Notes under the pieces: generated by a model | What the model was told of the DNA's origin: nothing | The model's database searches: none | The model's input: only the letters and a program-made list of their open reading frames with translations | In this document: piece after piece, positions 1 to 36,481 of the stretch | Layout of the letters: each line of letters opens with the position of its first letter | Position numbering within the stretch: the stretch's first letter is position 1 | Position numbers and translations under genes: made by a program | Assembly: GCA_002269645.1 (NCBI GenBank) | Contig: NIVC01004581.1 | Span: 1-41,387 of the forward strand | DNA from: Macrostomum lignano | Lineage: Eukaryota | Direction: 5' to 3' | DNA: 41,387 nucleotides

Positions 1-1280
1 CAGAGAAAGTAACTAAAAAATGTTTTGCTACGTCATCATTTTGTCTAAAATTGTTTCGCCATAATATTCTTAACTAGAAAGAACTGAAGCACTGGCTTTT
101 TCAACGCAAATTAAGCATTGCACAAAAATGGTAATTATAGCTGCTAATTGGTAACTGGTAATTGTTTCTGGTTTGCACAATTATCACTTTTGAGCTAGTT
201 TTATCCAGTTCTGATTCTTTCATTTCAGCAAAAAATGTATACATTACATATCGGTTAGAAATAAAATTTTCACTTGTCAAAATTAGCGCTTTATGATTTT
301 TTATTTGATTTGATTCACTTTGATTCAATGTGAGATAAGGGAAAGGAATTACCTAAGGCCATATATATTACATATTGCATGTGTAATTTTTGATTACACA
401 TTTTTGAGCTTATATACGCGGTCGGCGCTAAAGTTTCCAATTGAGTAAAATACAAAAAGCGCCGTATTTTAACCAAATGGGCGAATTTATTTAATAAGAT
501 GATTAAGTAATTCTGTGTCAAAAAGTTTAGGGTGGGTCCGGGTTTTGGTTACCGGTTAGGGGTTCAGGGTTCAGAGGTTAGGGTCTGGTTCTTGGTTAAG
601 GGTTTAAGGGTACGAGGTTTTGGGTTTACCCAGAACCCCAAAAAATTGCCATCCCGAACACCTATGACACAGGATTGATCACGCACAACTGTAAATATAG
701 ATAGCATTTGCTCATGCTCAAGCTCATGCAACATGCATGACTGCCATCATCTGTAGCCTGCAGAGTTCTAAAAAGTTCTTAAAAAATTAATACTTGCCGC
801 TCTACATTACTACTGTAGCCGTAATTATAGTAGTAAACATTACTATTGTATACATGATAATAAATATCTTGCAATTGGGAGGCTTCTAGAAAGAGATAAA
901 ATGATGGATTTATTAATTAAAGCGGAGATTGTACAAAAAATGCTAACGTTTTTCATCCATTTCCCTTCGGCCTTTTTTTCTCCATGTTGATGACTCGCTT
1001 GACTCGCTTAGCAGCGTCCCCCTGTTGGACCCCGCATGCAAGACTACCCACAAGAGTCTAAGCAGGCAAGATGTACTCTTGTGCGGGACGTGTGCGATCG
1101 CCATCCATCACAACTCTCTAGTGATAGACGACCTATTGATAAGGGCACCTGCTGCGGGGCTTGATACCAACATCGTAAGCTGCACTGGCATGTCGTCGGG
1201 GGGGGGTTTCAGTTTTCATCTTCTGCAGCCGCGGTAATGGTGCAGCCAAAGGCTACCGTTTGAAAGTCAGCCACTTATCT

Positions 1281-2165
1281 GGAGAGCCCCTAGGCCTGAC
1301 CTCGGTCAGCCGCTCCCCCAGCAGAGCCCCTATAGGCCTGACCCTCGGTCAGCCGCTCCCCCAGCAGAGCCCTATAGGCCTGACCCTCGGTCAGCCGCTC
1401 CCCCCAGCAGAGCCCCTATAGGCCTGACCCTCGGTCAGCCGCTCCCCCAGCAGAGCCCCTATAGGCCTGACCCTCGGTCAGCCGCTCCCCCAGCAGAGCT
1501 CCTATAGGCCTGACCCTCGGTCAGCCGCTCCCCCCAGCAGAGCCCCTATAGGCCTGACCCTCGGTCAGCCGCTCCCCCCAGCAGAGCCCCTATAGGCCTG
1601 ACCCTCGGTCAGCCGCTCCCCCCAGCAGAGCCCCTATAGGCCTGACCCTCGGTCAGCCGCTCCCCCCAGCAGAGCTCCTATAGGCCTGACCCTCGGTCAG
1701 CCGCTCCCCCCAGCAGAGCCCCTATAGGCCTGACCCTCGGTCAGCCGCTCCCCCCAGCAGAGCCCCTATAGGCCTGACCCTCGGTCAGCCGCTCCCCCAG
1801 CAGAGCCCCTATAGGCCTGACCCTCGGTCAGCCGCTCCCCCCAGCAGAGCTCCTATAGGCCTGACCCTCGGTCAGCCGCTCCCCCAGCAGAGCTCCTATA
1901 GGCCTGACCCTCGGTCAGCCGCTCCCCCCAGCAGAGCTCCTATAGGCCTGACCCTCGTCAGCCGCTCCCCCCAGCAGAGCCCCTATAGGCCTGACCCTCG
2001 GTCAGCCGCTCCCCCAGCAGAGCCCCTATAGGCCTGACCCTCGGTCAGCCACTCCCCCCAGCAGAGCCCCTATAGGCCTGACCCTCGGTCAGCCGCTCCC
2101 CCAGCAGAGCCCCTATAGGCCTGACCCTCGGTCAGCCACTCCCCCCAGGAGAGCCCCTATAGGCC
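1281..2165. repeat. Minisatellite, ~42-44 bp unit (CAGAGCCCCTATAGGCCTGACCCTCGGTCAGCCGCTCCCCCAG), ~21 copies
   Basis: Head-to-tail near-identical units varying mainly in C-run length. Each unit has a CTGACC-ctc-GGTCAG hairpin and a CCTATAGG palindrome. No spacers. Confidence 0.97.
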
Positions 2166-2813
2166 CACGCGTTTAAAGATGCACGCGTTTCGACAGTTTA
2201 AGCGTTATTCTGCTGAACAAGTAGAGTGAAAAGAAGTGAAGACACTGGAGAGGTGGTCCTATGCTGAATCTGATGGATTCAGAAGCTGCATGCTGAAAGT
2301 TCTGATGACTTGCGTGTAAAAAAGCATTGGATGCAGCAAAATCAGAACAGCAGAATCCTACGATGTATCCGACAGAGAGCGGCGGCGAGGTCACCAGTTC
2401 CGGTTGTAAAAAAAGAAAAAAGGGAAAAAAATCGAAAGATAAACTTCCGACAATAAAACGATTCAAACAATAAAAATATTAAAAATTTCCCTCAATAAAA
2501 ATTTTTGACCATCGCATATCTAGACAGAGGCAGCCTTGAGCCGGCACAAGAAATCATCCAGAAGCCATGGAGGCAGGAGCCTTGCTTTTTCTGCATTGGA
2601 ATTTCCTGACTTTCAGAAGAGTCGCCAGCTCGGTGCCATAAACTCGGCCATTAGCCGAACGACCAACACCTCTGAAGGCTTCCGGACTCTTCTGCATTTA
2701 AGAAAGTGGATTTCTGGCTCAGAAAATTCAAGCCATCAGCGACTCTGCAACTGCCGAACTGCGAATTCTTTCAACTCGAAGATTCAATCTCGCTCGATCT
2801 ACAAGCCGAAGTC

Positions 2814-2975
2814 ATGCTGAGATTTCTGATGCTCCTCGTTGCTCTGATTCTGGTGGGCGCCACGCAGCAGGCTCAGGCTGATTCATGCAGCTGCGAAGAT
2901 AACAAATGGCTGTGCAAGACCAAGTCAGGACGCTTCTGCGGTATCTGCCTTGGCCAGGGCGGCTGCTATGACTGA
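2814..2975 (+). CDS. Small secreted cysteine-rich peptide, 53 aa (MLRFLMLLVALILVGATQQAQA + DSCSCEDNKWLCKTKSGRFCGICLGQGGCYD); family unknown
   Basis: ATG 2814 to TGA 2973-2975. Textbook signal peptide (basic N-terminus, hydrophobic core, A-Q-A cleavage site), 6 Cys in a 31-aa mature part, and AATAAA at 3033-3038. Confidence 0.75.
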   Translation: MLRFLMLLVALILVGATQQAQADSCSCEDNKWLCKTKSGRFCGICLGQGGCYD

Positions 2976-3032
2976 GATGCCGAGAAGGCCCGACTTCGGA
3001 CTTAACAGGAACCACTAAACTTTGATTCTCTA

Positions 3033-3038
3033 AATAAA
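3033..3038 (+). promoter_or_regulatory. Candidate polyadenylation signal of the peptide gene
   Basis: AATAAA 58 nt after the stop codon, just before the (GTCA)n tract. Confidence 0.55.
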
Positions 3039-3117
3039 ACCGACCTATCATTGCAGCTACTTACCAACTTTGTGTGCAATGCTTGCATCCATAAAGCAAT
3101 GTATTGTTGTCATTCAT

Positions 3118-3563
3118 TCAGTCAGTCAGTCAGTCAGTCAGTCAGTCAGTCAGTCAGTCAGTCAGTCAGTCAGTCAGTCAGTCAGTCAGTCAGTCAGTCA
3201 GTCAGTCAGTCAGTCAGTCAGTCAGTCAGTCAGTCAGTCAGTCAGTCAGTCAGTCAGTCAGTCAGTCAGTCAGTCAGTCAGTCAGTCAGTCAGTCAGTCA
3301 GTCAGTCAGTCAGTCAGTCAGTCAGTCAGTCAGTCAGTCAGTCAGTCAGTCAGTCAGTCAGTCAGTCAGTCAGTCAGTCAGTCAGTCAGTCAGTCAGTCA
3401 GTCAGTCAGTCAGTCAGTCAGTCAGTCAGTCAGTCAGTCAGTCAGTCAGTCAGTCAGTCAGTCAGTCAGTCAGTCAGTCAGTCAGTCAGTCAGTCAGTCA
3501 GTCAGTCAGTCAGTCAGTCAGTCAGTCAGTCAGTCAGTCAGTCAGTCAGTCAGTCAGTCAGTC
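3118..3563. repeat. Perfect tetranucleotide microsatellite (TCAG/GTCA)n, ~111 copies
   Basis: Uninterrupted GTCA units preceded by 2-3 CATT units. Explains the SVSQ-repeat ORFs. Confidence 0.99.
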
Positions 3564-3899
3564 CCCTACTCACTGGAGACCAAATTAAATACCGCTGTGC
3601 CAGCCTTGCTACCATAGACAAAAGCTCCAATACAGCAAACGTTTCTTGGATTAAATTTAATGCGTGTAAGCCCAAAGGGGCTGCAAAAAGCTTTATTAGA
3701 ATAGCAGAGTTTACCGTGGAGTTTACTGCTTGTAAAACAGTCGATGTGATTTATGATTACTCAAAAACACAAAGCAAAAATCACAAGCCCATGCGAGTGA
3801 TATCGTCCATGGTGATTCTTCTCCCTACACTTTCCCACAGCTTCACAGGAAGAGTAGCACAAATTGAAGATAATTTCGTATTGAGATTTTTTATTTAGG

Positions 3900-4649
3900 A
3901 TGGCTGAATCAGCATTCTGTGGTATTCTGTGCCCGCAACCAACAACAACGAAGATGAGCAGAGACTCAATAAGCTGATTGCGTATATTGTGCCAGAAACT
4001 ACTAATAAGTGTAATGTGGATGGTAGAAATCTTTCGATCGTGTAATTGCGAAAAGAAGAAGACTTAATGGGCTAAAGGCAGAACATATGGACCGGCTTGG
4101 TGGTGCTGGCCGATCTATCCGAGAAGAGAAAGCGCGGTTTCAGCTACGTTCTTAAGTGGTTTATCCATAGATACGACATAAGTGTGGTGATCGCTTATCT
4201 GCATGGCGTATCGCATGTACGATGTACGTGAAGGATTATTTCAGCATGATGAAATGCAATGAAGATGAGTACCCGTTACGTAAAGGGTAGGGATTGCGTT
4301 GTGCCAGGACCTGTAATTCCATCTAGCATTGAAGAAACTCTTGTCTGAAGGTGTGTTTGGTAGTGATAGTCCATGACAACTCGTGAGTTCCGTGAGTTGT
4401 GCGGGGAGACCCTGTGTGTGATTGTCTACCTTGATTGAGGTTAATCGACTCTTACGGACCCAGCTCGACTCTCACTTTAACTATCAAGTCAAAAAACTGT
4501 TCAATAACTGTTCGTATATTCCAGAACATTATATAATATTTTTGCTCATTATTTGTTTGATTTATTTCCTGCTTATTCGTTATTCTTATTTATTTAGATC
4601 GTTTGTTTTATTTGGCCGGGACAAATAAATGCTTTTTTACATTAAAACA
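3900..4649 (+). mobile_element. Possible degenerate LTR-retrotransposon 3' remnant (integrase-tail-like stretch, polypurine tract, LTR-like segment)
   Basis: AAAGGGTAGGGA purine tract (4282-4293) followed by TG..., then a segment with AATAAA ending ...AAAACA at 4649. An upstream frame reads WTGLVVLADLSEKRKRGFSYVLKW, vaguely like an integrase C-terminus. No partner LTR in the window. Confidence 0.22.
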
Positions 4650-5550
4650 TATTGACTTTTTTGTCGTAACCAAAATTGGGGCTAAATTGATACCTACATG
4701 TGTGTACTATATAGTATACGTACGCAAGGACTTCTAGACTAGAAGTTAGTCTAGAAGCACGTCCTTGTACGTACGCAACAACGAAATAATCGGACAATGG
4801 TGATTAAGTTTGGCTTTTTGGACTCTAAGGGTAATTGGGCGAGTTCAATCTTCAGCATCGAGGAGCCTTTTCATATTGCTTGTTCTGGTTCCAGAACCAG
4901 AACCAATTTGTAAAGTATAACTTTTTGTCTCCATAACTAGAGGGAGATACGTGCTATAAAGTTTTTATTATTGAATGACAATCGCCAAGAAGAAAGTGAA
5001 AAAATGTGATAAGTGAGGTTGTTAAGGCAGTCAAACATTCAACAGAATTAAATAGTTATACTGCTGTTTTTCTTGGAAGATCCGAACCGATTCTGATACT
5101 GGTCTCGAGGTCTCGAGGTCTGTAATCGTGCTGACTAGTTTTTTTCGATTTTTAAGTTAAATGTAGATGCTGTGATGCTGTATATTCTTAATAAATTATC
5201 GATTTTGGTCATAAAAATTATGACTGTATAGAAACTAGAAGCCGCTTATAAATATTTGTTATATTATAATAAATGCTGCTATATGTTTTTAACTTCGTCA
5301 AGTTTACCATTTTTTCGTACCCTCAATAGGCTAGCTAGCATCATAGTAGTAGTCCACTTTAAAATTCTACTATTCTTATTTTTGGGCGGCTGGAGCCCAC
5401 TAATCTCTTTAGACGTGCTTCTTAGCGAAGTGCTTCATTTTCACACTGTTGTTGTGATCAACTGCAATCAACAAGCAATAGCATCATTGCTGATTGAAGT
5501 TAAGATTCCATAGGCCTAATCTGGCTTTTTATTTAGGCTTAGTTTAGGGG

Positions 5551-5570
5551 CCTAATTTAATTTTTTGTAG
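5551..5570 (+). promoter_or_regulatory. Branch point + 3' splice acceptor 64 nt upstream of the RSK start codon (5'UTR intron or trans-splice acceptor)
   Basis: CCTAAT...TTTTTTGTAG, followed by tandem CAG/CAG alternatives. Confidence 0.5.
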
Positions 5571-5633
5571 CTGCAGCAGACCCATTAATAGTATTTTTAT
5601 AGATAGGCTTATCTGTGTTAATCGAATAAAATC

Positions 5634-5693
5634 ATGCCAATTGCTCAACTTAGTGAACCATTCAAAGAAGTAAAGGTTGAAAAAACTCCTTCG
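5634..5693 (+). CDS. RPS6KA: p90 RSK coding exon 1 (MPIAQLSEPFKEVKVEKTPS)
   Basis: Resembles the vertebrate RSK2 N-terminus MPLAQLADPWQKMAVESPS. GTATGT donor at 5694, phase 0. Confidence 0.85.
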
Positions 5694-7781
5694 GTATGTA
5701 TTTTTGCTAAGTTTTATGCATGTCTTTTATTCAAAAAGTATGTCTAATTATCTTTGTAAGCTTTTTTCAGATATTTTTTTGTTTTGTGTTTTGTAATCTA
5801 TCATATCTTTTTAGTCTATAATTAGGGACTGTCTATGATTAGATATAGTCCATATGCTAGTGATGGATTGAAATTATTTTTTGTATTGAAATCAAAACTG
5901 AAATTTTCAGTTCTTTAGACTTGAAATCAAAATCAAAATTTTTTAAGTTAAACAAACTTTTGAATTTTGCTAATTATGCCAAAAGTTTAACAACTTACAT
6001 CTGCATTGTATATAGGCCCTACAAGCTTACATGTTTTTCTATAAAATATATTTGGTATTTAGACCTAAATACTTGAAATTACCTACTTAAAAACTTAGGA
6101 AATAAAAAAGCTGGTGCATTATACACTATACTTAGAGAAGAAAGTGTATTATTCACCACTATTTAAACTGGAGATCTATATGTAGATATATCAATTTCAT
6201 TAAGGCTTTAAAAGTCTAACTAATTAAATTCTACAGCCAATGAATTCAGCCAGTGTGCTTCCATGGAGGTTGAGGTGCATGCAGCACAAGGCTTGGAGCA
6301 ATGAGCGTACCCCATGCAATCTTTTCTTGCAAAAGAGGCGATTCTTGCCTCTCTACTAAGTCTGAATTGCACTTCTTTTCACTTCCTATAGATTTTCTTA
6401 TTTGTATAACATGGTCATGAATGCATAATTCTTAAAATATAACCAACATTTCAAAATGATTTTTGATGAATAGTGTCAAAATTCAGAATTGAAATTGAAA
6501 TTATTTTAATGCAAAATTAGTTTAGGTTTGAAATTTGGAATATTGAAATTGAAATTGAATTTTGATCTATCTCTACCATATGCTGTTTCATACTTGGAGT
6601 TATGCCTGAGGAAAATTGACAAAATTTCATAATTTGCACCAGACTTATACCAGGCTTAGGCCATAGCGTACCAAGCATAATGGACTAGGGGGTGGCCTAG
6701 GCAGTTTGTAGGAAGTTTTTTAATTCAAAAAAGTTTAATGCTTTTATTTGTATATTGCAATCATTAATTTATAAGTAAAAAAATAAAATGATAACATTGT
6801 CAAATGTTGTTGTGTTACAGTACAATTTATAAAATTAAAACTTATATTTTAATTTTTATAAATATAATATTTATAAAATATTTAATTACATAAATTCATT
6901 TAATCCTAATGTCATAGCCTTCAAAGTTTTATCTATTATCTATCTATAATCTATAGTTTTATGCCAAATTATTTTAATAGAGTTAGCAATTGCATCTATA
7001 TTATTTACTTTGTATATTATATATATTTATATCAATTTTTTGTTTGTCATAAATAAACAATACTTAATTAACTAGACCAATCTAATTTCTAGTAGGTAAA
7101 ATAAGTAAAATGTAGATAAGATAGATTTGCCATAAAAGCAATCAACCAAGTACTAAAATGGTAATAGGTAGTTTCTCTGTAACTAAAAATTCCTATATCT
7201 ATATTCATAGCTAATTAATTTTCTATAACTTTTAAATATGATGATAAATCCAATCACAATAGTTCTTGTATCATTTATTATTTAATGATGAAATTAAATA
7301 GTGATAGCAATGTTTTAACCTATTGCTTATTATAATATCTCATTTATTTATTGTATAAAAAGAATAGCTAGGATAGAGAAAAGAATAGCTATTTTAACCC
7401 CTAACTTTGCCCCACCCCTTAACCACAAAATGAACATATAACATGGAAAATCTCTGTTACTTAAGTCCATGACCCTAGAGACTTAAGAGTTTCCCTATGC
7501 CCTTTGCAATGAAAGCAAAAGTATCTATCTTAACTTTAGCCCCTAGGCCCTATCATCATAACTATAGAAAATGCACATGGCATTGAAAACCTTTATTGCT
7601 GAACTCCCTAAGCCTAAAGACTTAAGAGCTCTCCTTGCATTAAAAATAAAACATTTATCTTACACTTGGCCCCTATCACACCATGCACTCACTGTGCATT
7701 ATGGAAAATTAAACTTGAATTAAAAATTAGATTAAATTAAAATTAAACTGCGTGTTAGTTAACTTAATTAATTAATTTTAG

Positions 7782-8585: not shown

Positions 8586-9810
<1,225 letters not shown>

Positions 9811-10879: not shown

Positions 10880-11724
10880 TTTTAGTCAGGAATTAGCCAG
10901 GCATTAGTCATTAGTCAGACATAAACTAGGCATTAGCTAGGCATTAGTCTAGAATTAGTTACTTATTCTGACATTAGCCAGGCATTAGCCAGGCATCAGG
11001 CATTAGTCAAGCATTAGCCAGGCAATAGTCAGGCATTAGTCAGGCGTAAGCCAGGCAATAGTCAGGCATTAGTCAGGCGTAAGCCAGGCAATAGTCAGGC
11101 ATTAGTCAGGCATTAGTCAGGCATTAGTCAGGCGTTAGCCAGGCGTTAGCCAGGCGTTAGCCAGGCGTTAGCCAGGCGTTAGCCAGGCGTTAGCCAGGCG
11201 TTAGCCAGGCGTTAGCCAGGCGTTAGCCAGGCGTTAGCCAGGCGTTAGCCAGGCGTTAGCCAGGCGTTAGCCAGGCGTTAGCCAGGCGTTAGCCAGGCGT
11301 TAGCCAGGCGTTAGCCAGGCGTTAGCCAGGCGTTAGCCAGGCGTTAGCCAGGCGTTAGCCAGGCGTTAGCCAGGCGTTAGCCAGGCGTTAGCCAGGCGTT
11401 AGCCAGGCGTTAGCCAGGCATTAGCTAGGTATTAGTCAGGAATTAGTTACTTATTCTGACATTAGCCAGACATTAGCTCGGCATTAGCCAGGAATCAGGC
11501 ATTAGTCAAGCATTAGTCAGGCATTAGCCAGGCATTAGCCAGGCATTAGCTAAGCATTAGCTCGGTATTAGCCAGGCATCAGGCATTAGTCAAGCATTAG
11601 CCAGGCAATAGTCAGGCATTAGTTAAGTATTAGCCAGGCAATAGTCAGGCATTAGCCAGCAATAGTCAGGCATTAGTTAAGTATTAGCCAGGCAATAGTC
11701 AGGCATTAGTCAGGCATTAGCCAG
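10880..11724. repeat. RSK intron 5 minisatellite, 11-bp unit (GTTAGCCAGGC / ATTAGTCAGGC)
   Basis: Perfect core of ~26 units (~11133-11418) with diverged flanking units. Fills almost the entire intron. Confidence 0.96.
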
Positions 11725-12284: not shown

Positions 12285-13097
12285 TTTCCTCTTGAGATTC
12301 AGATGCCATCTGTAGGAGAATTTTCCTTGAGGTTCAGATGGTATCTGTAGGAGAATTCCCCTTGTTGTAGATTATACCATTAGGAGAATTTCCCTTGAGT
12401 TTCAGATGATACCAGTAGGAGAATTCCCCTTGATGTAGATTATACCAGTAGGAGAATTCCCCTTGATGTAGATTATACCAGTAGGAGAATTCCCCTTGAG
12501 TTTCAGATGGTATCTGTAGGAGAATTCCCCTTGTTGTAGATTATACCAGTAGGAGAATTCCCCTTGTTGTAGATTATACCATTAGGAGAATTTCCCTTGA
12601 GTTTCAGATGATACCAGTAGGAGAATTCCCCTTGATGTAGATTATACCAGTAGGAGAATTCCCCTTGGTGTAGATTATACCAGTAGGAGAATTCCCCTTG
12701 ATGTAGATTATACCAGTAGGAGAATTCCCCTTGATGTAGATGATTCCAGTAGGAGAATTCCCCTCTAGATTCAGATGGTATCAGTAGGAGAATTCCCCTT
12801 GAGATTCAGATGGTATCAGTAGGAGAATTCCCCTTAAGATTCAGATGGTATCAGTACTAGAATTCTCCTTGAGATTCAGATGGTATCAGTACTAGAATTC
12901 CCCTTGAGATTCAGATGGTATCAGTAGGAGAATTCCCCTTGAGATTCAAATGGTATCAGTAGGAGAATTCCCCTTGAGATTCAAATGGTATCAGTAGGAG
13001 AATTCCCCTTGAGATTCAAATGGTATCAGTAGGAGAATTCCCCTTGAGATTCAAATGGTATCAGTAGGAGAATTCCCCTTGAGATTCAGACGGTATT
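12285..13097. repeat. RSK intron 6 minisatellite, 33/35-bp units (GTAGGAGAATTCCCCTTGAGATTCAGATGGTATCA and variant)
   Basis: Tandem units starting ~12 nt after the donor. Two variant types occur in blocks. Confidence 0.95.
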
Positions 13098-15875: not shown

Positions 15876-16404
15876 TACTTATCTGAGCTATATCTCAACC
15901 CTTGTAAGTGCTTCTATTTTTAGTGCATGGAAATTGCCAACAGTTCCTATACATGCTGACTTTTGCGCTGCAAGACAGACAGTAATAAGATTTTTTGGCA
16001 TTTAAGCATCAGCTGACGGCAAGCCTTTCTTAGAATGCGGCGACTGCGGCTAAGGAAGCTTTAGCTAGATAGAGAAAAGCAAAGAGAGAGAGAGTGATTA
16101 GTCTGTCCCCCAGATCTGAATGTACTTTTATGTTAACCGCGGCCGTGTCGTGCAAATATTATTATTGACAGAGTTCACTGGGTGGCTCTGGGAAGAATAG
16201 GAGGTAGAAGAAAGGGATTTGCATTACAGAGCTTCACCATCCTTGCTCTCCGAGGCCTTCTGTAATATTAAAGCTAGCTATTTCCTAACAATAGGATTCA
16301 AACCTCGAAAAATCGTGCTTATAAATGCAAAAATTCTGTCTACTTTGGGATTTTGAAATGTATTGGAGGCATTCTCGTATTCTGTTTGGGGATTCCCATG
16401 TTGC

Positions 16405-17810
16405 TAGGGATTTTTGTCTGATTGGGATGTTTAATCAGCTGGGGTTTTTTGTCTGATTGGTCTGTTTAATCAGCTGGGGTTTTTTGTCTGATTGGGATGT
16501 TTAATCTGCTGGGGATTTTTGTCTGATTGGTCTGTTTAATCAGCTGGGGTTTTTTGTCTGATTGGTCTGTTTAATCAGCTGGGGTTTTTTGTCTGATTGG
16601 TTGTTTAATCAGCTGGGGTTTTTTGTCTGATTGGTCTGTTTAATCAGCTGGGGTTTTTTGTCTGATTGGGATGTTTAATCTGCTGGGGATTTTTGTCTGA
16701 TTGGTCTGTTTAATCTGCTGGGGATTTTTGTCTGATTGGTCTGTTTAATCTGCTGGGGATTTTTGTCTGATTGGTCTGTTTAATCTGCTGGGGATTTTTG
16801 TCTGATTGGTCTGTTTAATCTGCTGGGGATTTTTGTCTTATTAGGATGTTTAATCTGCTGGGGATTTTTGTCTTATTAGGATGTTTAATCAGCTGGGGAT
16901 TTTTGTCTGATTGGGATGTTTAATCTGCTGGGGATATTTGTCTGATTGGGATTTTTAATCAGCTGGGGATATTTGTCTTATTGGGATGTTTAATCAGCTG
17001 GGGTTTTTTGTCTGATTGGTCTGTTTAATCAGCTGGGGTTTTTTGTCTGATTGGTCTGTTTAATCAGCTGGGGTTTTTTGTCTGATTGGTCTGTTTAATC
17101 AGCTGGGGTTTTTTGTCTGATTGGTCTGTTTAATCAGCTGGGTTTTTTTGTCTGATTGGTCTGTTTAATCAGCTGGGGTTTTTTGTCTGATTGGTCTGTT
17201 TAATCAGCTGGGGTTTTTTGTCTGATTGGTCTGTTTAATCAGCTGGGGTTTTTTGTCTGATTGGGATGTTTAATCTGCTGGGGATTTTTGTCTGATTGGT
17301 CTGTTTAATCTGCTGGGGATTTTTGTCTGATTGGTCTGTTTAATCTGCTGGGGATTTTTGTCTGATTGGTCTGTTTAATCTGCTGGGGATTTTTGTCTTA
17401 TTAGGATGTTTAATCTGCTGGGGATATTTGTCTTATTAGGATGTTTAATCTGCTGGGGATTTTTGTCTTATTAGGATGTTTAATCAGCTGGGGATTTTTG
17501 TCTGATTGGGATGTTTAATCTGCTGGGGATATTTGTCTGATTGGGATTTTTAATCAGCTGGGGTTTTTTGTCTGATTGGTCTGTTTAATCAGCTGGGGAT
17601 TTTTTTCTTATTGGGATGTTTAATCAGCTGGGGATATTTGTCTGATTGGGATGTTTAATCAGCTGGCGATTTTTGTCTGATTGGGATTTTTAATCAGCTG
17701 GGGATTTTTGTCTGATTGGGATGTTTAATCTGCTGGGGATTTTTGTCTGATTGGGATGTTTAATCAGCTGGGTTTTTGTCGGATTGAGATTTTTAGTCAG
17801 CTTGGGATTT
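16405..17810. repeat. RSK intron 7 distal minisatellite, 35-bp unit (CTGATTGGTCTGTTTAATCAGCTGGGGTTTTTTGT), ~40 copies
   Basis: Tandem units with patchwork variants. Confidence 0.96.
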
Positions 17811-17959
17811 TATCTGATTGTTTTTTATGATTTTTGTTTCATTGGGACTTTGCATTCGACTAGGGGGGGGGGGGATATTTGGGAATCTGTTGATCAGGCG
17901 GCAGTCGACGCACGGAATCGAACCCACCTACTCTGGCACCTCTGCTCTCTGCACTGCAG

Positions 17960-18269: not shown

Positions 18270-19785
18270 TTTTGGTTGTTGAATAGCAATCCGATTGTTG
18301 TTTGTTGGTTGTTGAACTGCAGCAATCCAATTGTTGTTTGTTGGTTGTTGAATAGCAATCCGATTGTTGTTTGTTGGTTGTTGAATTGCAGCAATCCAAT
18401 TGTTGTTTGTTGGTTGTTGAATAGCAATCTGATTGTTGTTTGTTGGTTGTTGAATAGCAATCTGATTGTTGTTTGTTGGTTGTTGAATTGCAGCAATCCA
18501 ATTGTTGTTTGTTGGTTGTTGAATAGCAATCCGATTGTTGTTTGTTGGTTGTTGAATTGCAGCAATCCAATTGTTGTTTGTTGGTTGTTGAATAGCAATC
18601 TGACTGTTGTTTGTTGGTTGTTGAATAGCAATCTGATTGTTGTTTGTTGGTTGTTGAACTGCAGCAATCCAATTGTTGTTTGTTGGTTGTTGAATAGCAA
18701 TCTGATTGTTGTTTGTTGGTTGTTGAATTGCAGCAATCCGATTTTTGTTTGTTGGTTGTTGAATAGCAATCCAATTGTTGTTTGTTGGTTGTCGAATAGC
18801 AATCCGATTGTTGTTTGTTGGTTGTTGAATTGCAGCAATCCGATTGTGGTTTGTTGGTTGTTGAATAGCAATCCGATTGTTGTTTGTTGGTTGTTGAACT
18901 GCAGCAATCCAATTGTTGTTTGTTGGTTGTTGAATAGCAATCTGATTGTTGTTTGTTGGTTGTTGAATTACAGCAATCTGATTGTTGTTTGTTGGTTGTT
19001 GAATTACAGCAATCCAAGTGTTGTTTGTTGGTTGTTGAATAGCAATCCGATTGTTGTTTGTTGGTTGTTGAATTGCAACAATCCAATTTTTGTTTGTTGG
19101 TTGTTGAATAGCAATCCAATGGTTGTTTGTTGGTTGTTGAATAGCAATCCGATTGTTATGGTTGTTGAATTGCAGCAATCCAATTGTTGTTTGTTGGTTG
19201 TTGAGTAGCAATCCGATTGTTGTTTGTTGGTTGTTGAATAGCAATCTAGTTGTTGTTTGTTGGTTGTTGAATAGCAATCTAGTTGTTGTTTGTTGGTTGT
19301 TGAATAGCAATTCGATTGTTGTTTGTTGGTTGTTGAATTGCAATCCGATTGTTGTTTGTTGGTTGTTGAATTGCAGCAATCCGATTGTTGTTTGTTGGTT
19401 GTTGAATTGCGACAATCCAATTTTTGTTTGTTGGTTGTTGAATAGCAATCCAATTGTTTGTTTGTTGTTGAATAGCAATCAAATTGTTGTTTGTTTGTTG
19501 TTGAATAGCAATCCGATTGTTGTTTGTTGGTTGTTGAATTGCAGCAATCCAATTGTTGTTTGTTGGTTGTTGAATAGCAATCTGATTGTTGTTTGTTGGT
19601 TGTTGAATTGCGACAATCCAATTTTTGTTTGTTGGTTGTTGAATAGCAATCCAATTGTTTGTTTGTTGTTGAATAGCAATCCAATTGTTGTTTGTTTGTT
19701 GTTGAATAGCAATCCAATTGTTGTTTGTTGGTTGTTGAATAGCAATCCAATTGTTTTGTTGTTTGTTTAATAGCAATCCGATTGC
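18270..19785. repeat. RSK intron 8 minisatellite, largely alternating 33- and 36-bp units (TTGTTGTTTGTTGGTTGTTGAATAGCAATCCGA / ...GAATTGCAGCAATCCAA)
   Basis: Tandem units. Lengths divisible by 3 explain the long spurious ORFs on both strands. Confidence 0.97.
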
Positions 19786-20050
19786 TGTTTTGTTGATTGT
19801 TGCATTAGCAATCAAAGTGTTGATGATTGTTGCATTAGCAATCAAAGTGTTGTTGATTGTTGTATTAGCAATCAGTGTTTTTGATTGTTGCATTAGCAAT
19901 CAAAGTGTTGTTGATTGTTGCATTAGCAATCAAAGTGTTGTTGATTGTTGCATTAGCAATCAAAGTGTTGTTGATTGTTGCATTAGCAATCAAAGTGTTG
20001 TTGATTGTTGCATTAGCAATCAAAGTGTTGTTGATTGTTGCATTAGCAAT
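19786..20050. repeat. RSK intron 8 distal array, 30-bp unit (TTGTTGCATTAGCAATCAAAGTGTTGTTGA) x~8
   Basis: Related to the preceding array (TTGTTG, AGCAATC). Ends ~19 nt before the acceptor. Confidence 0.95.
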
Positions 20051-20339: not shown

Positions 20340-22515
20340 CTGTCCCGCTTTGGGGGAGGTCGTGAAAATAATGTCAAATTTTTGCTCTCGTGGCTTCAAC
20401 TTCCTCAGCTGGGATTTCATCTGTTTCAATAAAATTGTTCAAAATCAGACTAGTAAACAAAGTTCTTCGTATGTCTACTAATAGTACAGATTTGTTTCTT
20501 ATTAAGAAACTTGAACTCAAAATAGAGAATAATACAGTACCGCCCTACTGCCAGTACCTGCTCGTAGTTAGTAGTATCGAACGCGTTTTTCTTTTCGAAA
20601 ACAACAGAGACCCAAGTATTGCTGTTATCTTACCATTATTAATTGATATGCCAGCGTGTTCTATACTTTTTTACATTATAATCGAATTGTTTTGTGAACT
20701 GTTTTTCCCAGTCTTTATTCACTTGTTAATCTTCTTTAATGCCAGTAAGCTCGCAGGTTCTGTCTGTCTCTTTTTAAAAACTTATTTATTAACTTTAATT
20801 TGCATGCCTTTTACTATATGCCTGTGTTTCTTTTTATATATGGATAAATCTTTCGCGTACACACACACACTACTTTTTACAAGAAGTACATAGTTGCAGA
20901 AATCTTGCTGCCTATCTGATCTGATATTTTCTCCCGTTCACCTGGTTGCTGACCCCCTCTATCAGTCCCTATTTTGCAGGTGTCGGTGCTTCATGTTTGA
21001 AATATCGAATGAGAAAAATTAAAATCTTTTCATTTACGTTGTCATTATATTATTGACAGGCCATTGGATTATAGGACAATACAATACTGAGTAAGCATTG
21101 CGCACAGGTCTATCTGGGGCGACTGTTGAGTCACGTGTTCGTCACGTGAGCTGCAGCTTTGCAGAATCGTAAAAAAAGTCGCAAAAAAGACGTCCAAGAC
21201 GTCAAGTGTTAGCGCTTAACTTTCTACTAACTCAAGTAGGCTGAACAGAGTTGTTGAAAATGCGAAATGCGATTCGAATTCATTAAGTGACGCAGCTGCA
21301 CTTTTTAGAACGCAACTCAGTGATTCTTAGGCAACTCGTGAACGACTTTTTGGCGACTTGTACCGTGCCTGGGTACCGTCTTCATCGGGTTAAACAAATC
21401 AAGTCTTCTATTGTTGTTTTTTAACCTGGCTAGCGTGTTGTTTTATAAAAGTGTGCGTGCGTTTCTAAAATCATTTGTTGCCTGTGATCTCTGATATTAA
21501 ACCGGATTGGAACAGCAGCGATGCGGGCATTCCGAAACCCCCAGTTTCTATTCGATCAATTTTGGCTCACTCTATCTTCATTATCACATTTTATCTGTAC
21601 AATTTAGAATTTGTTGTCCGCATATCAAACGATTTCAAACGAATTACATGGCAGTGTAATGTTGACAAAATTATTGAATCAAATATAACTGCTATACTAT
21701 TTCTAGGAATTCGATTAGTTGCGGTTCCCGCGCTGTTAAACACTGCCCGCCTTTGAAACACTGCCCGCCTTTGAAATTTCTTATTTATTGGTAGAATTAT
21801 TTTACGATAATAAATCTCAAATAGCTCTACTTGCAGTAGCTAAACTTGACCTGTTTATCTCGTAGCACAATTTGCACCAGGTTGAGGTGTAGCAATGAAG
21901 TAAAAATAAATATGCAGAGTAACGATATTGGCCATAATTATATGAGATGGCAGTCAAAGTAATTAATAGCAGAAGGCTGCGCGCGTATTACCTTTGTAAA
22001 CACGCTCTGTTCTCTCTGTAGCTGCGCATTTAACCCGCAGCTATCAACGCTAGCACGAACTTGCAGACCTGTTTTGCATCGTCTCTCTGTCTCAAGTGTA
22101 CTCAAAATGTATAGATGAAAAGAAAATGCCTTTCGAAGCAGACGGCAGGGTTTATAGTTCTGAGAAAATGAAATAAAAATTCTTGTATTTTTCGTTTTGA
22201 CAAAATTGGCTAAATAATTAATGAGTACTTTTTCACAGCCAGGTAAAATATTTGACGGAAAACTCAGAATACAGAATGACTTCTTTGTTTGAAAATATTA
22301 TATATTGTGACCAAGAAGTTTTTCAACTGTTGTAATATTTGACTCCCCTGACACTTATGGGCACGCGAAAGTGTGGGCGGATGAAGCTGTGTGCAGCTGT
22401 GAGCATTGAAGGTACATGTACATTCAATCGTTGTTAGAAAGTTTTTGTTTTGATTTTCTTGCAAGCAAAACCAGGCAATGTAAGCACGCAAATATGAGAG
22501 CCTGACATGCAATCT

Positions 22516-23270
22516 TAACTCTGACACCCAATCTGAACCCTGACACCCTATCTGAACCCTGACACCCTATCTGAACCCTGACACCCTATTATGACTCTGA
22601 CACCCAATCTGAACCCTGACACCCTATCTGAACCCTGACACCCTATCTGAACCCTGACACCCTATTATGACTCTGACACCCAATCTGAAGCCTGACACCC
22701 TATCTTAACTCTGACAGCCAATCTGAACCCTGACACCCTATCTGAACCCTGACACCCTATCTTGACTCTAACACCCAATCTGGAGCCTGACATCCAATCT
22801 GGAGCCTGACACCCTATCTTGACTCTCGGACACCCCTATCTTGACTCCCTGACACCCTATCTTGACTCTCTGACACCCAATCTGAACCCTGACACCCTAT
22901 TATGACTCTGACACCCAATCTGAAGCCTGACACCCTATCTTAACTCTGACAGCCAATCTGGACCCTGACACCCAATCTGAACCCTGACACCCTATTATGA
23001 CTCTGACACCCAATCTGAACCCTGACACCCTATCTGAACCCTGACACCCTATCTGAACCCTGACACCCTATTATGACTCTGACACCCAATCTGAAGCCTG
23101 ACACCCTATCTTAACTCTGACAGCCAATCTGAACCCTGACACCCTATCTGAACCCTGACACCCTATCTTGACTCTAACACCCAATCTGGAGCCTGACATC
23201 CAATCTGGAGCCTGACACCCTATCTTGACTCTCGGACACCCCTACCTTGACTCCCTGACACCCTATCTTG
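22516..23270. repeat. Intergenic minisatellite, ~18-bp unit (CTGACACCCWATCTGAACC) with a ~406-bp higher-order duplication
   Basis: The variant string including CTCGGACACCCC recurs at 22827 and 23233. Confidence 0.94.
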
Positions 23271-23844: not shown

Positions 23845-25827
23845 AGTGATGAATTGATGTGTGTTGGTGACTCAGTGATGAATTGATTTGTGTCAGTGAT
23901 GAATTGATGTGTGTTGGTGACTCAGTGATGAATTGATTTGTGTCAGTGATGAATTGATTTGTGTCAGTGATGAATTGATGTGTGTTGGTGACTCAGTGAT
24001 GAATTTATTTGTGTCAGTGATGAATTGATTTGTGACAGTGATGAATTGATTTGTGACAGTGATGAACTGATTTGTGTCAGCGATAGATAGATTGTGTCAG
24101 TGATAGATAGATAGTGTTAGCGATAGATAGATTGTGTCAGTGATAGATAGATTGTGTCAGTGATAGATAGATTGTGTCAGCGATAGATAGATTGTGTCAG
24201 TGATAGATAGATTGTGTCAGCGATAGATAGATTGTGTCAGCGATAGATAGATTGTGTCAGCGATAGATAGATAGATTGTGTCAGTGATAGATAGATTGTG
24301 TCAGCGATAGATAGATTGTGTCAGCGATAGATAGATTGTGTCAGCGATAGATAGATAGATTGTGTCAGTGATAGATAGATTGTGTCAGTGATAGATAGAT
24401 TGTGTCAGTGATAGATAGATAGTGTTAGCGATAGATAGATTGTGTCAGTGATAGATAGATTGTGTCAGCGATAGATAGATTGTGTCAGCGATAGATAGAT
24501 TGTGTCAGCGATAGATAGATAGATTGTGTCAGTGATAGATAGATTGTGTCAGCGATAGATTTTGTCAGCGATAGACAGATTGTGTCAGTGATAGATAGAT
24601 TGTGTCAGCGATAGATAGATTGTGTCAGCGATAGATAGATTGTGTCAGCGATAGATAGATAGATTGTGTCAGTGATAGATAGATTGTGTCAGCGATAGAT
24701 AGATTGTGTCAGCGATAGATAGATAGATTGTGTCAGTGATAGATAGATTGTGTCAGCGATAGATAGATTGTGTCAGCGATAGATAGATAGATTGTGTCAG
24801 TGATAGATAGATAGTGTCAGCGATAGATTTTGTCAGCGATAGATAGATTTTGTCAGCGATAGATAGATTGTGTCAGCGATAGATAGATTGTGTCAGTGAT
24901 GATTTGTGTCAGCGATAGATGGAATGTGTCAGCGATAGATAGATAGTGTCAGCGATAGATGGATTGTGTCAGCGATAGATAGATAGATTGTGTCAGCGAT
25001 AGATAGATAGATTGTGTCAGCGATAGATAGATTGTGTCAGTGATAGATAGATAGATTTTGTCAGCGATAGATAGATAGATTGTATCAGTGATAGATAGAT
25101 TGTGTCAGTGATAGATAGATAGATTGTGTCAGCGATAGATAGATTGTGTCAGTGATAGATAGATAGATTGTGTCAGCGATAGATAGATAGATTGTGTCAG
25201 TGATAGATAGATTGTGTCAGTGATAGATAGATTGTGTCAGCGATAGATAGATTGTGTCAGCGATAGATAGATTGTGTCAGCGATAGATAGATAGATTGTG
25301 TCAGCGATAGATGGATTGTGTCAGTGATGAACTGATTTGTGTCAGCGATAAATAGAATGTGTCAGCGATAGATAGATAGTGTCAGCGATAGATGGATTGT
25401 GTCAGCGATAGATAGATAGATTGTGTCAGCGATAGATAGATAGATTGTGTCAGTGATAGATAGATAGATTGTGTCAGCGATAGATAGATAGATTGTGTCA
25501 GCGATAGATAGATAGATTGTGTCAGTGATAGATAGATTGTGTCAGTGATAGATAGATTGTGTCAGCGATAGATAGATTGTGTCAGCGATAGATAGATTGT
25601 GTCAGCGATAGATAGATAGATTGTGTCAGCGATAGATGGATTGTGTCAGTGATGAACTGATTTGTGTCAGCGATAAATAGAATGTGTCAGCGATAGATAG
25701 ATAGTGTCAGCGATAGATGGATTGTGTCAGCGATAGATAGATAGATTGTGTCAGCGATAGATAGATAGATTGTGTCAGTGATAGATAGATAGATTGTGTC
25801 AGCGATAGATAGATAGATTGTGTCAGC
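23845..25827. repeat. Intronic minisatellite: 21-bp GTCAGTGATGAATTGATTTGT grading into 20/24-bp GTCAGYGATAGATAG(ATAG)ATTGT, left arm
   Basis: Tandem units. A ~325-bp higher-order duplication near 25311/25636. Starts 17 nt from the PLXDC acceptor. Confidence 0.97.
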
Positions 25828-26293
25828 TGTTGCCCCCAGGACCCCGGGTCCTGCACGTAATGGCGTGGTGAACTATCTGTGCAGTATGAGACTGGTATGG
25901 CCTTTATCCCAGCCAGCGATGCTCACACCTGCCTCCCCTGGCGGGCTGATAGCTCAAGAGACTCTGTCTCCTGATTTTCACCTTGCAAGGCGCACTTCGA
26001 AGGGTACTCGTCCCGTGGGTGTTAAGGCAGGCCCCCTTGGGCCCTGCCGAGCTGATTCGTTGGCGCCGGGTCCTGGTGTGACCATAAACGCACCCTCTAA
26101 TGTCCCAGTGTAACTCCGTGCTGATGGACGCTTGGCCAGGGAGTAGTCTGGTCGCTAACGGTTCCCCTTGCGCTTTTGGGTCCCCCGCAGGGTGGTATTT
26201 TGCTTTTTGGGGCCTGCCGCTTGGTTTGGGGTTGCGGCCTTGCGGCTCTTTGCCTGTGTTCTGCAGGAAGTCCCACCTTTTTACTTCCAGCCA

Positions 26294-27813
26294 ATGGCTT
26301 CTAACCGAAGTAACAAACCGGCTGTGGATGACACAGTGCCTCCGGCCTCGGCTGGGGCCGTGGACTCCTCGGCCATACCACCTGCTACCATCGGGGACGC
26401 CTCGGCGAGACCCGTGGAGCCAACTCTGAGCGGTGCCTCCGAGAAGACACCTGCTACTCCAGCTGCTAAGAAACGCAGCACCACCTCTGGAGCTGCCCGC
26501 CGTCGACTTAACAAGGCGAGGCGGGCCAAGGAGGGCGGAAGCCAAACCGGTGCCAGGGGCCAACGGCCCGCGGCAGCGGAAGCTTCCCAGTCTGGGGCGG
26601 TGGCGGAAGAGGGCCTCGAGCCCACGGAAGCCCCTGCCCAGGATAGGGAGGCCGATGCAGCCGGGAGGGTGGACAGCCCACCTGAAGAAAGCTCCACTGA
26701 CCCCCGGGCCTCCTACGCTGATGCGGCAAAGAGGCAACCGGCGGTTGTCATCCTGGGAAAGGACGCGCGCCTGTCTCCCGATCAGCTGAAGCAGGTGAGA
26801 AGTGCCGTTGATGGCCTCCTGTGGAAGCAAACTCTGAAGGGCACGCCTCTGAACATTCATTCGAATGCGACGAGGGACTCGTGCCTTCTCATTTGGCCCA
26901 GTGATGCTGACTCGGGTCGGCGGCTCCTTGAGCTGCTGCCCGAGCAGAGCTGGGACCTCAACCTAGCCTTCTGCAGAGAGGACGAGCGCCCCCGGACCAA
27001 GAGGCATCGAATCTGGGTCCCGGCCAGGAGCGTTGTTACCTCTGCTGACGAGCTCCGGAAAGGACTGCTAGCAGTCAACCGGGAGCTTCCCGCCGCGGGC
27101 CTAGTGGTGCATGACACCCTTAAGCGCACCGACGGCACTGGCTTCACAGCCATCCTGGGGCTGTCGGACGCCTGGATGAGGCGTTATCCACACGGCAGCT
27201 TCATCAACGTCGGCCTTTGGAAGCTGCGCATCCGCTCCTACGAGGCCGACCCTCCCCGTGGCAGTGAGCAGGGCGGGCGGGATGCGGAGGCGACCGGGGC
27301 CGAGGCGCAAGCCTCTGCTCAGACTGCCAAAGCAAACCGCCCTGCCCGGCAGCACGGCCGCGCGGGCAAAGCTGAGCGCGCTGCTGAGGGCGGAGGCGAC
27401 CGACGCCCGGCGCGTAGCACCAAGCGGCGCGGCCTGTACCAGCGTGCAGCTGAGGCAGTCCGTACCGCCAAAATCTCCCAGCTGAGGCGAGAGGTCGCCG
27501 GGACGCCTAGGCGCACCAGTTCGTCCAGGGAGGGTGGGGACGTCCCAGCTGGGCCCAACCCCTCGGGCAGGGCCGACTGGAGACGGACCCGCCTGCCCAG
27601 GCGGCTGGCTGCTCCAGGGCATTGGGCCAATCTGAGGCGGAGGACCCCATGGATGGTGGGCAAAGGGCGGCGAACGCTGCCTACTGCCTTCCGGCCAATC
27701 GGGGGCCTTTTGCTGAAGAAGAGCCCATGGACACCGGCGACCCCGACCCGAAGCCGGTGAGCGCCGAGGAGGAGGAGGAACTCCTGGCGGCTGCAACATC
27801 CGATCTGCAATGA
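26294..27813 (+). pseudogene. Retrotransposon ORF1 (basic N-terminus RRRLNKARRAK, SYADAAK, DUF4780-like core, acidic tail), probably with a 1-nt frameshift between ~27511 and 27620
   Basis: The frame from ATG 26294 stops at 27760. A second frame carrying the acidic PMDTG..EEEEELL tail ends at TGA 27811-27813, overlapping the ORF2 ATGs. The DUF4780 resemblance is from recall only. Confidence 0.7.
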
Positions 27814-30800: not shown

Positions 30801-31227
30801 GCATCTCCGCAGGTGGCACGACACCCGGAATTGTAGGCAATCCCGTGCTGCCGTCCCCTGTCCCTCTCCTCTCCTGCGTAGAGCCCTCCTCAGGCTCAAC
30901 CGCAGAGACCTCAGAGCAGTTAGCATGGCCCTCTCCGGGCATGGCTGCTTCTCTCGCCACCGCTTCCTTCAGGGCCAAGTACCCGAGGAGCGGTGCCCCT
31001 TCTGCCGCTCAGGCAGTGAAAACGCCGAGCATTTTATCTGCCACTGCCCGGTTTTCACCAGGGCCAGGCTTACTCACCTCGGGCCAAACCCGGTTCTCTC
31101 CGACGTTTGCAGGCCCGAGAGCATCCCACTGCTCGCCCGGTACCTCAGGGACACCGGACGAGCTGATTTCTTCCCCACCGTCGGTGAGGAGGACCGCGCT
31201 GCAGGCGAGACCGACGGGTCCCCCTGA
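27810..31227 (+). pseudogene. Retrotransposon ORF2 (AP endonuclease, reverse transcriptase, RNase H, C-terminal CCHC), split by an internal deletion/frameshift at ~28450
   Basis: APE: LQIN, VQEPW, GDVNAHH..WGS, IDTT; the SDH motif is cut after SLS. RT: KAPGPDG, FLDIEGAFD, PQGGVL, YADD. RNase H: YTDGS, SEVLA, SDSQAAL, WIPGH, GNERAD. C-terminus: CPFC..ENAEHFICHC. Confidence 0.95.
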
Positions 31228-31958: not shown

Positions 31959-32139
31959 CTGAGATTACACGCGTTTGTGTTGCCCAGTCAGAACTCTATT
32001 AGCTACTTATTACTGAGGAACTTCTCTGATGCTGGCGCGATGAAAAGTTTTGGTTTGCAATAGCAAATTCTACAGATTGTATCAATTGTAAGTTTGTCAG
32101 GTTGATTTACATGAGGTAGAAGGGAAAAGTTTGAAAAAT

Positions 32140-33150: not shown

Positions 33151-33265
33151 GTTTAAAAAGCCAACAGAGCCACTATGTAAATTAAAACACTCACCAAAAC
33201 TGTCAATCTTTTGAACCAAATAAAAACAATAAACAGACTGCAAAACCAGCATAACCCAAACTCAC

Positions 33266-33414: not shown

Positions 33415-33502
33415 CTGGGAATTGTGGGAGTGGAGAAGCAAGCTGTTGTATGATTGCTTTCTTGGGATAATTCTGTGTACAGCTAATCACAGCTCAAATG
33501 TA

Positions 33503-34000
33503 GTCTCAATGTGATCTTAATGTCACCCCAATGTGATCTTAATGTCAACCCAATGTGATCTTAATGTCAACCCAATGTGATCTTAATGTCAACCCAATGT
33601 GATCTTAATGTCAGTCTCAATGTGATCTTAATGTCAGTTTAAATGTGATCTTAATGTCAGTTTAAATGTGATCTTAATGTCACCCCAATGTGATTTTAAT
33701 GTCAACCCAATGTGATCTTAATGTCAGTCTGAATGTGATCTTAATGTCAGTCTGAATGTGATCTTAATGTCAGTCTGAATGTGATCTTAATGTCAGTCTG
33801 AATGTGATCTTAATGTCAGTCTGAATGTGATCTTAATGTCAGTCTGAATGTGATCTTAATGTCAGTCTGAATGTGATCTTAATGTCAGTCTGAATGTGAT
33901 CTTAATGTCAGTCTGAATGTGATCTTAATGTCAGTCTGAATTTGATCTTAATGTCAGTCTGAATTTGATCTTAATGTCAGTCTGAATGTGATCTTAATTT
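33503..34000. repeat. PLXDC intronic minisatellite, 23-bp unit (AATGTGATCTTAATGTCAGTCTG), ~21 copies
   Basis: Tandem units with a polar variant gradient. Confidence 0.96.
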
Positions 34001-34111
34001 AGTCTTAACCCAAGATACCATTGAGTAAGCCTAATTAAGGTCACCTCATCGTCACCTAGTCATGGTTACGAACTCGCACTAAAATAACAACACAAGTGCA
34101 GCGCCACTTAC

Positions 34112-36410: not shown

Positions 36411-36481
36411 TCTATATGCAAAGCACAAGATCAAGAGACCATTTCAGCCCCTCATTACAACAGCAGTCAGAGAGAACTTAC

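Follow-up and report, generated by a model that had tools for sequence, protein, structure and literature searches.

A small Macrostomum lignano gene predicted to encode a secreted six-cysteine peptide with a hypervariable core

Results and Discussion

A 53-codon reading frame for a six-cysteine peptide

The stretch analyzed here, called the window, is the 41,387-bp contig NIVC01004581.1 of the Macrostomum lignano assembly GCA_002269645.1, and it carries a gene for a six-cysteine peptide. Reading of the sequence placed the start ATG at 2814-2816 and the stop TGA at 2973-2975, which gives an ORF of 53 codons that is followed by AATAAA at 3033-3038; the features of the gene are collected in Table 1. 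The precursor translates as MLRFLMLLVALILVGATQQAQA + DSCSCEDNKWLCKTKSGRFCGICLGQGGCYD, a 22-aa signal and a 31-aa mature peptide, and the cysteines of the mature part are spaced C-x-C-x6-C-x7-C-x2-C-x5-C. A first-pass annotation of this DNA had called the signal, the six-cysteine mature peptide, the spacing, the stop and the AATAAA, and the sequence bore out these calls to the base. It had also remarked that the supplied ORF track hides the gene inside a longer non-ATG frame, and the mechanical ORF list does contain a GTG-started 89-aa ORF (2706..2975) within which the peptide ORF lies. The transcript of the six-cysteine gene probably ends some 15-20 nt past AATAAA.

Table 1. Coordinates of the six-cysteine peptide gene and adjoining features in the window
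Feature	Position	Strand	Basis
Upstream block (putative core promoter), duplicated together with the gene	2625..2726	+	Paralog similarity from 2625
5′ UTR	2727..2813	+	No ATG before 2814; 22-nt indel and in-frame TGA in the paralog leader
Signal peptide, 22 codons, MLRFLMLLVALILVGATQQAQA	2814..2879	+	Sequence, ORF list
Mature 31-aa peptide DSCSCEDNKWLCKTKSGRFCGICLGQGGCYD and TGA	2880..2975	+	Sequence, ORF list
Hypervariable inter-cysteine core (EDNKWL-C-KTKSGRF-C-GI-C-LG)	2895..2954	+	Paralog p-distance 0.63
3′ UTR, with AATAAA at 3033-3038	2976..3055	+	AATAAA and flanking CATTGCAGCT kept in the paralog
(AGTC)n microsatellite, ~114 units	3109..3563	+	Same position behind the gene at all four loci

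By inspection, the precursor has the properties of a Sec signal peptide: a basic residue at position 3 (M-L-R), a 12-residue hydrophobic stretch, FLMLLVALILVG, and then ATQQAQA|D, with Ala at −3 and −1 of the predicted cleavage site (A-x-A). A crude signal filter also passed the precursor. The mature peptide of the window contains 4 K/R and 4 D/E residues, for a net charge of 0, and both dibasic and amidation sites are absent from its sequence and from that of the mature paralog described below.

The gene is annotated at three homeologous loci

The six-cysteine peptide is 100% identical to the GenBank entry [quoted passage not shown], which belongs to a cluster of three members on three contigs of GCA_002269645.1, the window contig among them. 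The GenBank gene call in the window spans 2730-2975, and the two other copies start at the equivalent of 2727. It had been anticipated that annotation pipelines would miss the gene; instead, GenBank annotates the window gene (2730..2975), its two homeologs and, as a complete 56-aa protein, its paralog. All gene models of GCA_002269645.1 are RNA-seq transcript assemblies (StringTie, TACO and de novo) with TransDecoder ORFs (PMC5730564), and the GenBank model therefore implies a transcript. We infer from the way in which the annotation was built that the six-cysteine gene is transcribed.

The three annotated proteins begin (F)KPSATLQ..., an N-terminal part that is translated 5′ UTR. ATG 2814 is the first ATG in the annotated transcript, none being found between the annotated starts (2727/2730) and 2814, and we take it as the true start because the paralog has both an in-frame TGA 12 codons upstream and the 22-nt leader indel. 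The "partial" flag of the entry means just that the frame remains open to the 5′ end of the transcript. We conclude that the GenBank coding sequence is overextended at its 5′ end at all three loci and that the true product is a 53-aa protein translated from the first AUG.

The three loci are syntenic, each flanked on one side by an F-box/LRR gene and on the other by an RSK-like kinase gene with two kinase domains, and they are 98-99% identical, a three-copy state that fits the known redundancy of the polyploid M. lignano assembly. Within the 162-nt coding sequence, a single difference was found among the three homeologs, a synonymous TGC/TGT exchange that leaves the peptide identical. When the window was compared with its more diverged homeolog, L002, only 1 of 450 sites differed across the upstream block and gene (2550-2999), against 102 of 3,230 sites (3.2%) across the surrounding 3.2 kb, and this low local divergence reflects either constraint or gene conversion. 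Homeolog divergence over positions 1-6500 is a mosaic: the window and the other homeolog, L001, are 99.5% identical downstream of 3213 and ~97% identical upstream of 2550, and identity between the window and L002 is ~96-97% on both sides of the gene. The mosaic suggests that subgenome copies have recombined or undergone conversion in the vicinity of the gene.

The family consists of two annotated M. lignano genes

A phmmer search, exhaustive over 1.84 billion representative proteins, gave three matches. One was the gene itself. Another was BOX15_Mlig013770g1 (PAA93506.1 / A0A267H5E7), a complete 56-aa M. lignano protein, MLRFLMLLAALLLVSATQQAAAADECSCHQDGIRCIGGEKCNEGFCNKDSQGGCYL, which matched the single-sequence query at E = 3.9e-5 with 58% identity. 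The remaining match, a 1030-aa repeat protein of Peronospora effusa (E = 1.9e-12 summed over 12 repeats), was rejected as a low-complexity repeat artefact. A word-indexed search of 5.8 billion proteins, run with the single sequence and with a two-sequence profile, solely recovered the gene's own cluster and the same paralog. An orthologue from another species was not found among the 1.84 billion protein representatives, and neither tblastn nor a six-frame Cys-pattern scan revealed further paralogs within the window. The gene had been described as an orphan, a description that holds for matches outside M. lignano and fails within the species on account of the one paralog. We conclude that, in the protein collections searched, the family comprises two annotated genes, both from M. 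lignano.

The inter-cysteine core diverges faster than noncoding DNA

The paralog locus, L004, is unlinked to the window locus and has no called gene within 10 kb of it. The two loci share a unit of ~0.5 kb, corresponding to window positions 2625-3108, plus the (AGTC)n microsatellite that follows. Included in the shared unit are the upstream block, the leader motifs, the ATG context, the signal peptide, and AATAAA together with sequence beyond it; the paralog is also single exon, and its signal peptide is near-identical. The microsatellite lies ~50 nt beyond the presumed poly(A) site and stands behind the gene in L001, L002, the window and L004. Similarity between the paralog loci stops inside the repeat, which delimits the duplicated unit on its 3′ side, and (AGTC)n would be either a part of the ancestral duplicated unit or the mediator of its duplication.

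Divergence from the paralog is distributed unevenly over the unit. The p-distance was 0.25 in the upstream block (2625-2726), 0.23 in the 5′ UTR, 0.30 in the 3′ UTR and 0.25 in the 3′ flank; within the coding sequence it was 0.12 in the signal peptide (with one 3-nt indel), 0.13 in DSCSC, 0.63 in the inter-cysteine core (2895-2954) and 0.17 in QGGCYD. The core thus stands at 0.63 versus 0.26 for noncoding DNA (276 pooled aligned sites; Fisher's P = 8e-8), and the signal peptide is less diverged than noncoding DNA (Fisher's P = 0.02). Indels in the coding sequence measure 3 and 6 nt, all multiples of three, and those in noncoding sequence measure 1, 6, 22, 14, 1, 2 and 4 nt. Full identity is limited to two of the 20 aligned core codons, each of them a TGC for cysteine.

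At the protein level, both peptides have six cysteines, an N-terminal D-x-CSC and a C-terminal QGGCY, and the loop residues all differ. Cysteine spacing in the paralog is C-x-C-x6-C-x5-C-x4-C-x7-C, in which the fourth cysteine is shifted by two positions (x7/x2 to x5/x4) with the distance between the third and fifth cysteines unchanged, and the last loop is two residues longer. Homologs conserving the cysteine pattern had been proposed as a check on the gene, and the paralog supplies such a homolog as to cysteine number and departs from it in the placement of the fourth cysteine and the length of the last loop. The mature paralog contains 3 K/R and 6 D/E residues, for a net charge of −3.

By the Nei-Gojobori method, the signal has a dN of 0.125 and a dS of 0.152, and the mature part has a dN of 0.75 and a dS of 0.60. 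As dS in the mature part is also high, the core may owe its divergence to replacement or indel scrambling and not to positively selected point substitutions. When the two cores were aligned as nucleotides with gaps, the score was no better than that of shuffled sequences (P = 0.16), an outcome compatible alike with point substitutions, small indels, compensated frameshifts or segment replacement. The pair has the hallmarks of hypervariable secreted peptides, taken as a functional class and not as a statement of homology: the signal is conserved, the cysteine count is conserved and the loops diverge beyond the neutral level. We conclude from this single paralog pair that the scaffold (signal, cysteine count and termini) appears to be under purifying selection, with the loops apparently either free or driven to change.

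Conservation argues against a fortuitous reading frame

When the window was block shuffled, an ORF combining a signal-like N terminus with an even number of at least six cysteines arose in 11% of shuffled windows, or 0.115 expected per window; the same crude filter applied to the real window found the peptide ORF as its sole match. The ORF pattern by itself is not beyond chance expectation. It might accordingly be asked whether the ORF is fortuitous and encodes no functional peptide, the transcribed DNA around it being a recently duplicated ~0.5-kb repeat unit linked to (AGTC)n. The unit is indeed short, adjoins a microsatellite and is found at loci that are not linked, the cores of the two paralogs cannot be aligned with each other, and no homologue was found outside M. 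lignano. Nevertheless, despite ~25% noncoding divergence, both copies keep the ATG, the frame (with indels that are multiples of three), the six cysteines and the termini, and the signal peptide is intact and less diverged just downstream of a leader that has suffered a 22-nt indel and an in-frame stop. Local conservation among the homeologs and the presence of gene models at all four loci also speak against a fortuitous frame, which we regard as unlikely. On the opposite strand, an antisense ORF of 79 aa (2812..3051) was rejected as a candidate, as it is not conserved at L004, where the sense ORF alone is conserved.

We judge the gene to be real because its annotation is transcript derived at three loci, because it is conserved among the homeologs, and because its paralog keeps the frame, the signal and the six cysteines. 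We conclude with considerable confidence that the gene is genuine and encodes a secreted, disulfide-rich peptide.

The mature peptide matches no described fold or family

Single-sequence AlphaFold2 modeled the 31-residue window peptide with a mean pLDDT of 84.3 as all-beta, with no helix, and placed all six cysteines in strands at mature residues 3-5, 11-14, 19-24 and 28-30; the paralog model had a pLDDT of 72.5 and an N-terminal hairpin, and single-sequence models of such short peptides can be confidently wrong. Structure prediction followed by Foldseek had been suggested as a way of placing the peptide, and it yielded no significant fold match in the PDB for either model, the best probabilities being 0.03-0.04. 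Neither mature peptide matched Pfam at E ≤ 10, a PDB profile search with the two mature peptides aligned gave no match, and an Rfam scan of the whole window returned nothing. In Pfam, the signal region gave sub-threshold matches to KASH and to Defensin_propep (E = 0.04), the latter of which is a generic match to a hydrophobic signal. The Pfam, PDB profile and Foldseek results agree with the first-pass expectation of a lineage-restricted peptide without a match to a described family. The sequence is already in GenBank/UniProt as an uncharacterized protein, and the family and its cysteine framework appear to be undescribed.

Several known frameworks were considered and rejected. The knottin spacing (C-x3-7-C-x3-6-C-x0-5-C-x1-4-C-x4-13-C) is at odds with the first loop of one residue (C-S-C) in both members, and no Pfam knottin or toxin family matched. 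CS-alpha/beta defensins have a CxxxC helix and a C-terminal CxC; the window peptide lacks CxxxC, carries an N-terminal CxC and an internal CxxC, and has no predicted helix. A resemblance of the N-terminal cysteines to VWC/Fn1 modules had been suggested and was not sustained, as those modules have 8-10 cysteines (C2xxC3xC4, C8C9xxC10) and the peptide has six, and as neither VWC nor fn1 was matched in Pfam at E ≤ 10.

EGF-like domains, which likewise contain six cysteines and form two small beta hairpins, were the top Foldseek neighbors of the paralog model (TM-score of ~0.3), but the matches were nonsignificant (E = 5-10; probability, 0.03-0.04), no Pfam match was found, and the EGF spacing C-x7-C-x4-5-C-x10-13-C-x-C-x8-C is absent from the window peptide. 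Those neighbors and the small size of the secreted product are what could recommend an endogenous signaling peptide, such as a neuropeptide, a hormone or a growth factor-like ligand. Signaling peptides, however, usually conserve the mature part while the signal drifts, the opposite of the pattern in the M. lignano pair; the lack of an orthologue among the 1.84 billion representatives and of dibasic or amidation sites points the same way, and we consider a signaling role highly improbable.

A PDB sequence search gave a local, nonsignificant match (E = 0.29) to the N terminus of Pinus sylvestris defensin 1 (PDB 5nce), a pine defensin that is also small and disulfide rich, with CKTxSGxF as the shared string. 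The aligned segments are lCKTkSGrFcGiCl..ggC in the window peptide and mCKTpSGkFkGyCvnntnC in the defensin. This CKTxSGxFxGxC resemblance and the sub-threshold Defensin_propep match would suit a defense peptide, antimicrobial or antipredator, produced by epidermal, rhabdite, pharyngeal or gut glands, and a conserved signal joined to a hypervariable, cysteine-framed mature peptide is typical of host defense families. The pine defensin match, however, spans the first strand and loop alone, one strand of the defensin fold, against a window peptide predicted to be all-beta, and it was lost when the two-sequence profile was used; the Defensin_propep match lies below threshold. Moreover, the net charges of 0 and −3 are unlike those of cationic, membrane-active peptides, and the cationic antimicrobial class was rejected on that ground. 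The first-pass annotation had listed an antimicrobial among its options, and the charges weaken that option. M. lignano is a diatom feeder, a diet that makes a prey-capture venom unlikely, and we know of no venom apparatus in this species. A defense role seems to us rather doubtful.

A conserved upstream block contains a putative core promoter

The most conserved noncoding stretch between the paralogs lies at 2677-2707, where the window reads GGCTTCCGGACTcTtCTGCATTTAAGaAAGT (conserved block, GGCTTCCGGACTnTnCTGCATTTAAGnAAGT). It includes GCTTCCGG at 2678-2685, which on the reverse strand (CCGGAAGC) is similar to an ETS-type site, as well as TTTAAG, a TATA-like element, at 2697-2702, ~25-30 nt upstream of the annotated transcript start. 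The upstream block is a candidate for the core promoter, as judged from these elements, and would offer a minimal promoter of ~100 bp that could serve as a small cell-type-specific driver if expression were confirmed.

Annotated 5′ ends vary among sequence-identical copies (81 versus 82 aa), which suggests that the ends are coverage defined. Genes of M. lignano that undergo spliced-leader (SL) trans-splicing are recognized by a YTNCAG acceptor where the mature mRNA begins, together with SL-containing reads. The sequence GCTCAG at 2717-2722, 2-7 nt upstream of the annotated starts, departs from YTNCAG and is missing from the paralog through a deletion, and trans-splicing at an AG just 5′ of the transcript start is unsupported.

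A probable family of fast-evolving extracellular peptides

Starting from the observed gene structure, transcript-derived annotation, paralogy and divergence pattern, we think it probable that the two genes form a young family, confined to M. lignano, of secreted three-disulfide mini-proteins that act as fast-evolving extracellular binders. The window would contain, from 2727 to ~3055, a small intronless transcribed gene whose message is translated from the first AUG at 2814 into the 53-aa precursor. The 22-aa signal would direct entry into the ER and be cleaved after AQA, and the remaining 31 residues would, if the structural model is correct, fold into a compact beta-rich mini-protein with three disulfides that is secreted without further processing. 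Since duplication, the loops between the cysteines would have been rewritten, presumably under diversifying selection, and the upstream block, the UTRs, the signal, D-x-CSC and QGGCY retained. Because toxin, defense and reproductive peptides show the same divergence pattern, the most likely role, by analogy, is an extracellular one in which the peptide binds a partner that itself changes fast.

A secreted, cysteine-rich mini-peptide with hypervariable loops is a familiar kind of product. In conotoxin-type families, a conserved signal precedes a hypervariable mature peptide in which the cysteine codons are conserved and substitution is elevated even at synonymous sites. The conotoxin-type superfamilies, frog skin peptides and beta-defensin precursors share their evolutionary mode with the M. 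lignano pair, a likeness that is an analogy of process; unlike conotoxins, the M. lignano genes lack a propeptide, have one exon and show no homology of sequence or framework (no Pfam match). That mode fits the broad class of antimicrobial, venom, adhesive-gland or reproductive peptides that the first-pass annotation had put forward. Within the class, we lean toward a glandular secretion for reproductive or other interindividual interaction in preference to a membrane-disrupting antimicrobial.

Our leading specific guess is a reproductive or gland secretion, because many small orphan secreted products of M. lignano are prostate limited (PMC5977470). In its specific form, the proposal is a seminal fluid or reproductive gland peptide, from prostate, cement gland or antrum, that acts on the mate, with sexual conflict driving the hypervariability of the loops; we offer it tentatively, as a possibility that falls well short of being probable. 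An in situ hybridization screen of this species found 76 of 146 candidates to be prostate limited, and an ORF could be read in 65 of these, with a signal peptide predicted in 38 of the 65 (PMC5977470). The putative seminal fluid proteins of M. lignano (Mlig-pro) come from the same species as the present pair, and many of them are small secreted products that lack homologues elsewhere (PMC5977470). The six-cysteine product shares these properties, being small, secreted and lineage restricted; its mature part diverges fast, and its charge, neutral to acidic, would suit a peptide of the ligand type. Against a reproductive role, the sequence holds no reproduction-specific feature, and the gene IDs, the peptide and the DNA strings were not found in the supplements of the screen, which may lack sequences (PMC5977470).

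A full-text literature search turned up no mention of Mlig020725 or Mlig013770. Mlig020725 was not found in the supplements of Wudarski 2017 and Grudniewska 2018, nor were Mlig020725 and Mlig013770 in those of Mouton 2018, the Cells 2026 paper and Weber 2018, among which ID formats differ. A prefix search of the Brand 2020 supplements yielded no IDs of the Mlig format, which makes the absence of Mlig020725 there uninformative, and the GBE 2023 study uses Trinity IDs.

The most far-reaching version of the fast-evolving binder, which we consider speculative and on balance improbable, is that the peptides represent a new disulfide-rich fold or framework (CxC-x6-C...C...C...QGGCY), confined to Macrostomum, whose loops have been diversified by antagonistic coevolution, for instance as a seminal or gland peptide that manipulates the mate. 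If so, flatworms would possess a "conotoxin-like" hypervariable peptide system outside a venom context. Provided that the peptide is indeed produced and secreted, it would offer a compact 31-residue scaffold with a cysteine framework that matches no curated family, and the two genes would be a natural pair in which all but the scaffold has been rewritten, a case for studying the origin and diversification of secreted peptide families in a neopolyploid flatworm. M. lignano lends itself to tests of these ideas through transgenesis, RNAi and established mating and adhesion assays. On present evidence, the peptide remains one among many uncharacterized lineage-specific secreted peptides.

Other features of the window

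A GC-rich 44-bp minisatellite (1283-2165; ~20 copies, 96% match) lies ~0.5 kb upstream of the six-cysteine gene and is also present, in different copy numbers, in L001 and L002. The RSK-like gene, of the ribosomal S6 kinase type with two kinase domains and Pkinase_C, extends from 5634 to ~20400. Its introns are packed with long minisatellites at 8876-9810 (26 bp, 36 copies), 10883-11724 (11/33 bp), 12286-13096 (35 bp), 16403-17820 (35 bp, 41 copies) and 18272-20050 (33 bp, 53 copies), which give rise to long spurious ORFs in several frames.

Positions 26168-31227 are taken up by a non-LTR retrotransposon that is GC rich (56-66%). It comprises a 530-aa ORF without a Pfam match (26168-27760), an AP-endonuclease ORF (27810-28505) and a 976-aa ORF for reverse transcriptase and RNase H (28297-31227), which overlaps the endonuclease ORF in another frame and thereby suggests a frameshift between the endonuclease and reverse transcriptase parts. 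Minisatellite arrays are distributed over 21000-41387, at 22501-23268, 24072-25814, 32141-33152, 33497-34005, 34570-35530, 36015-36412 and 37928-38977 (70 bp, 15 copies), and several of them have a strong GC skew, for example 0.82 at 32001-33000.
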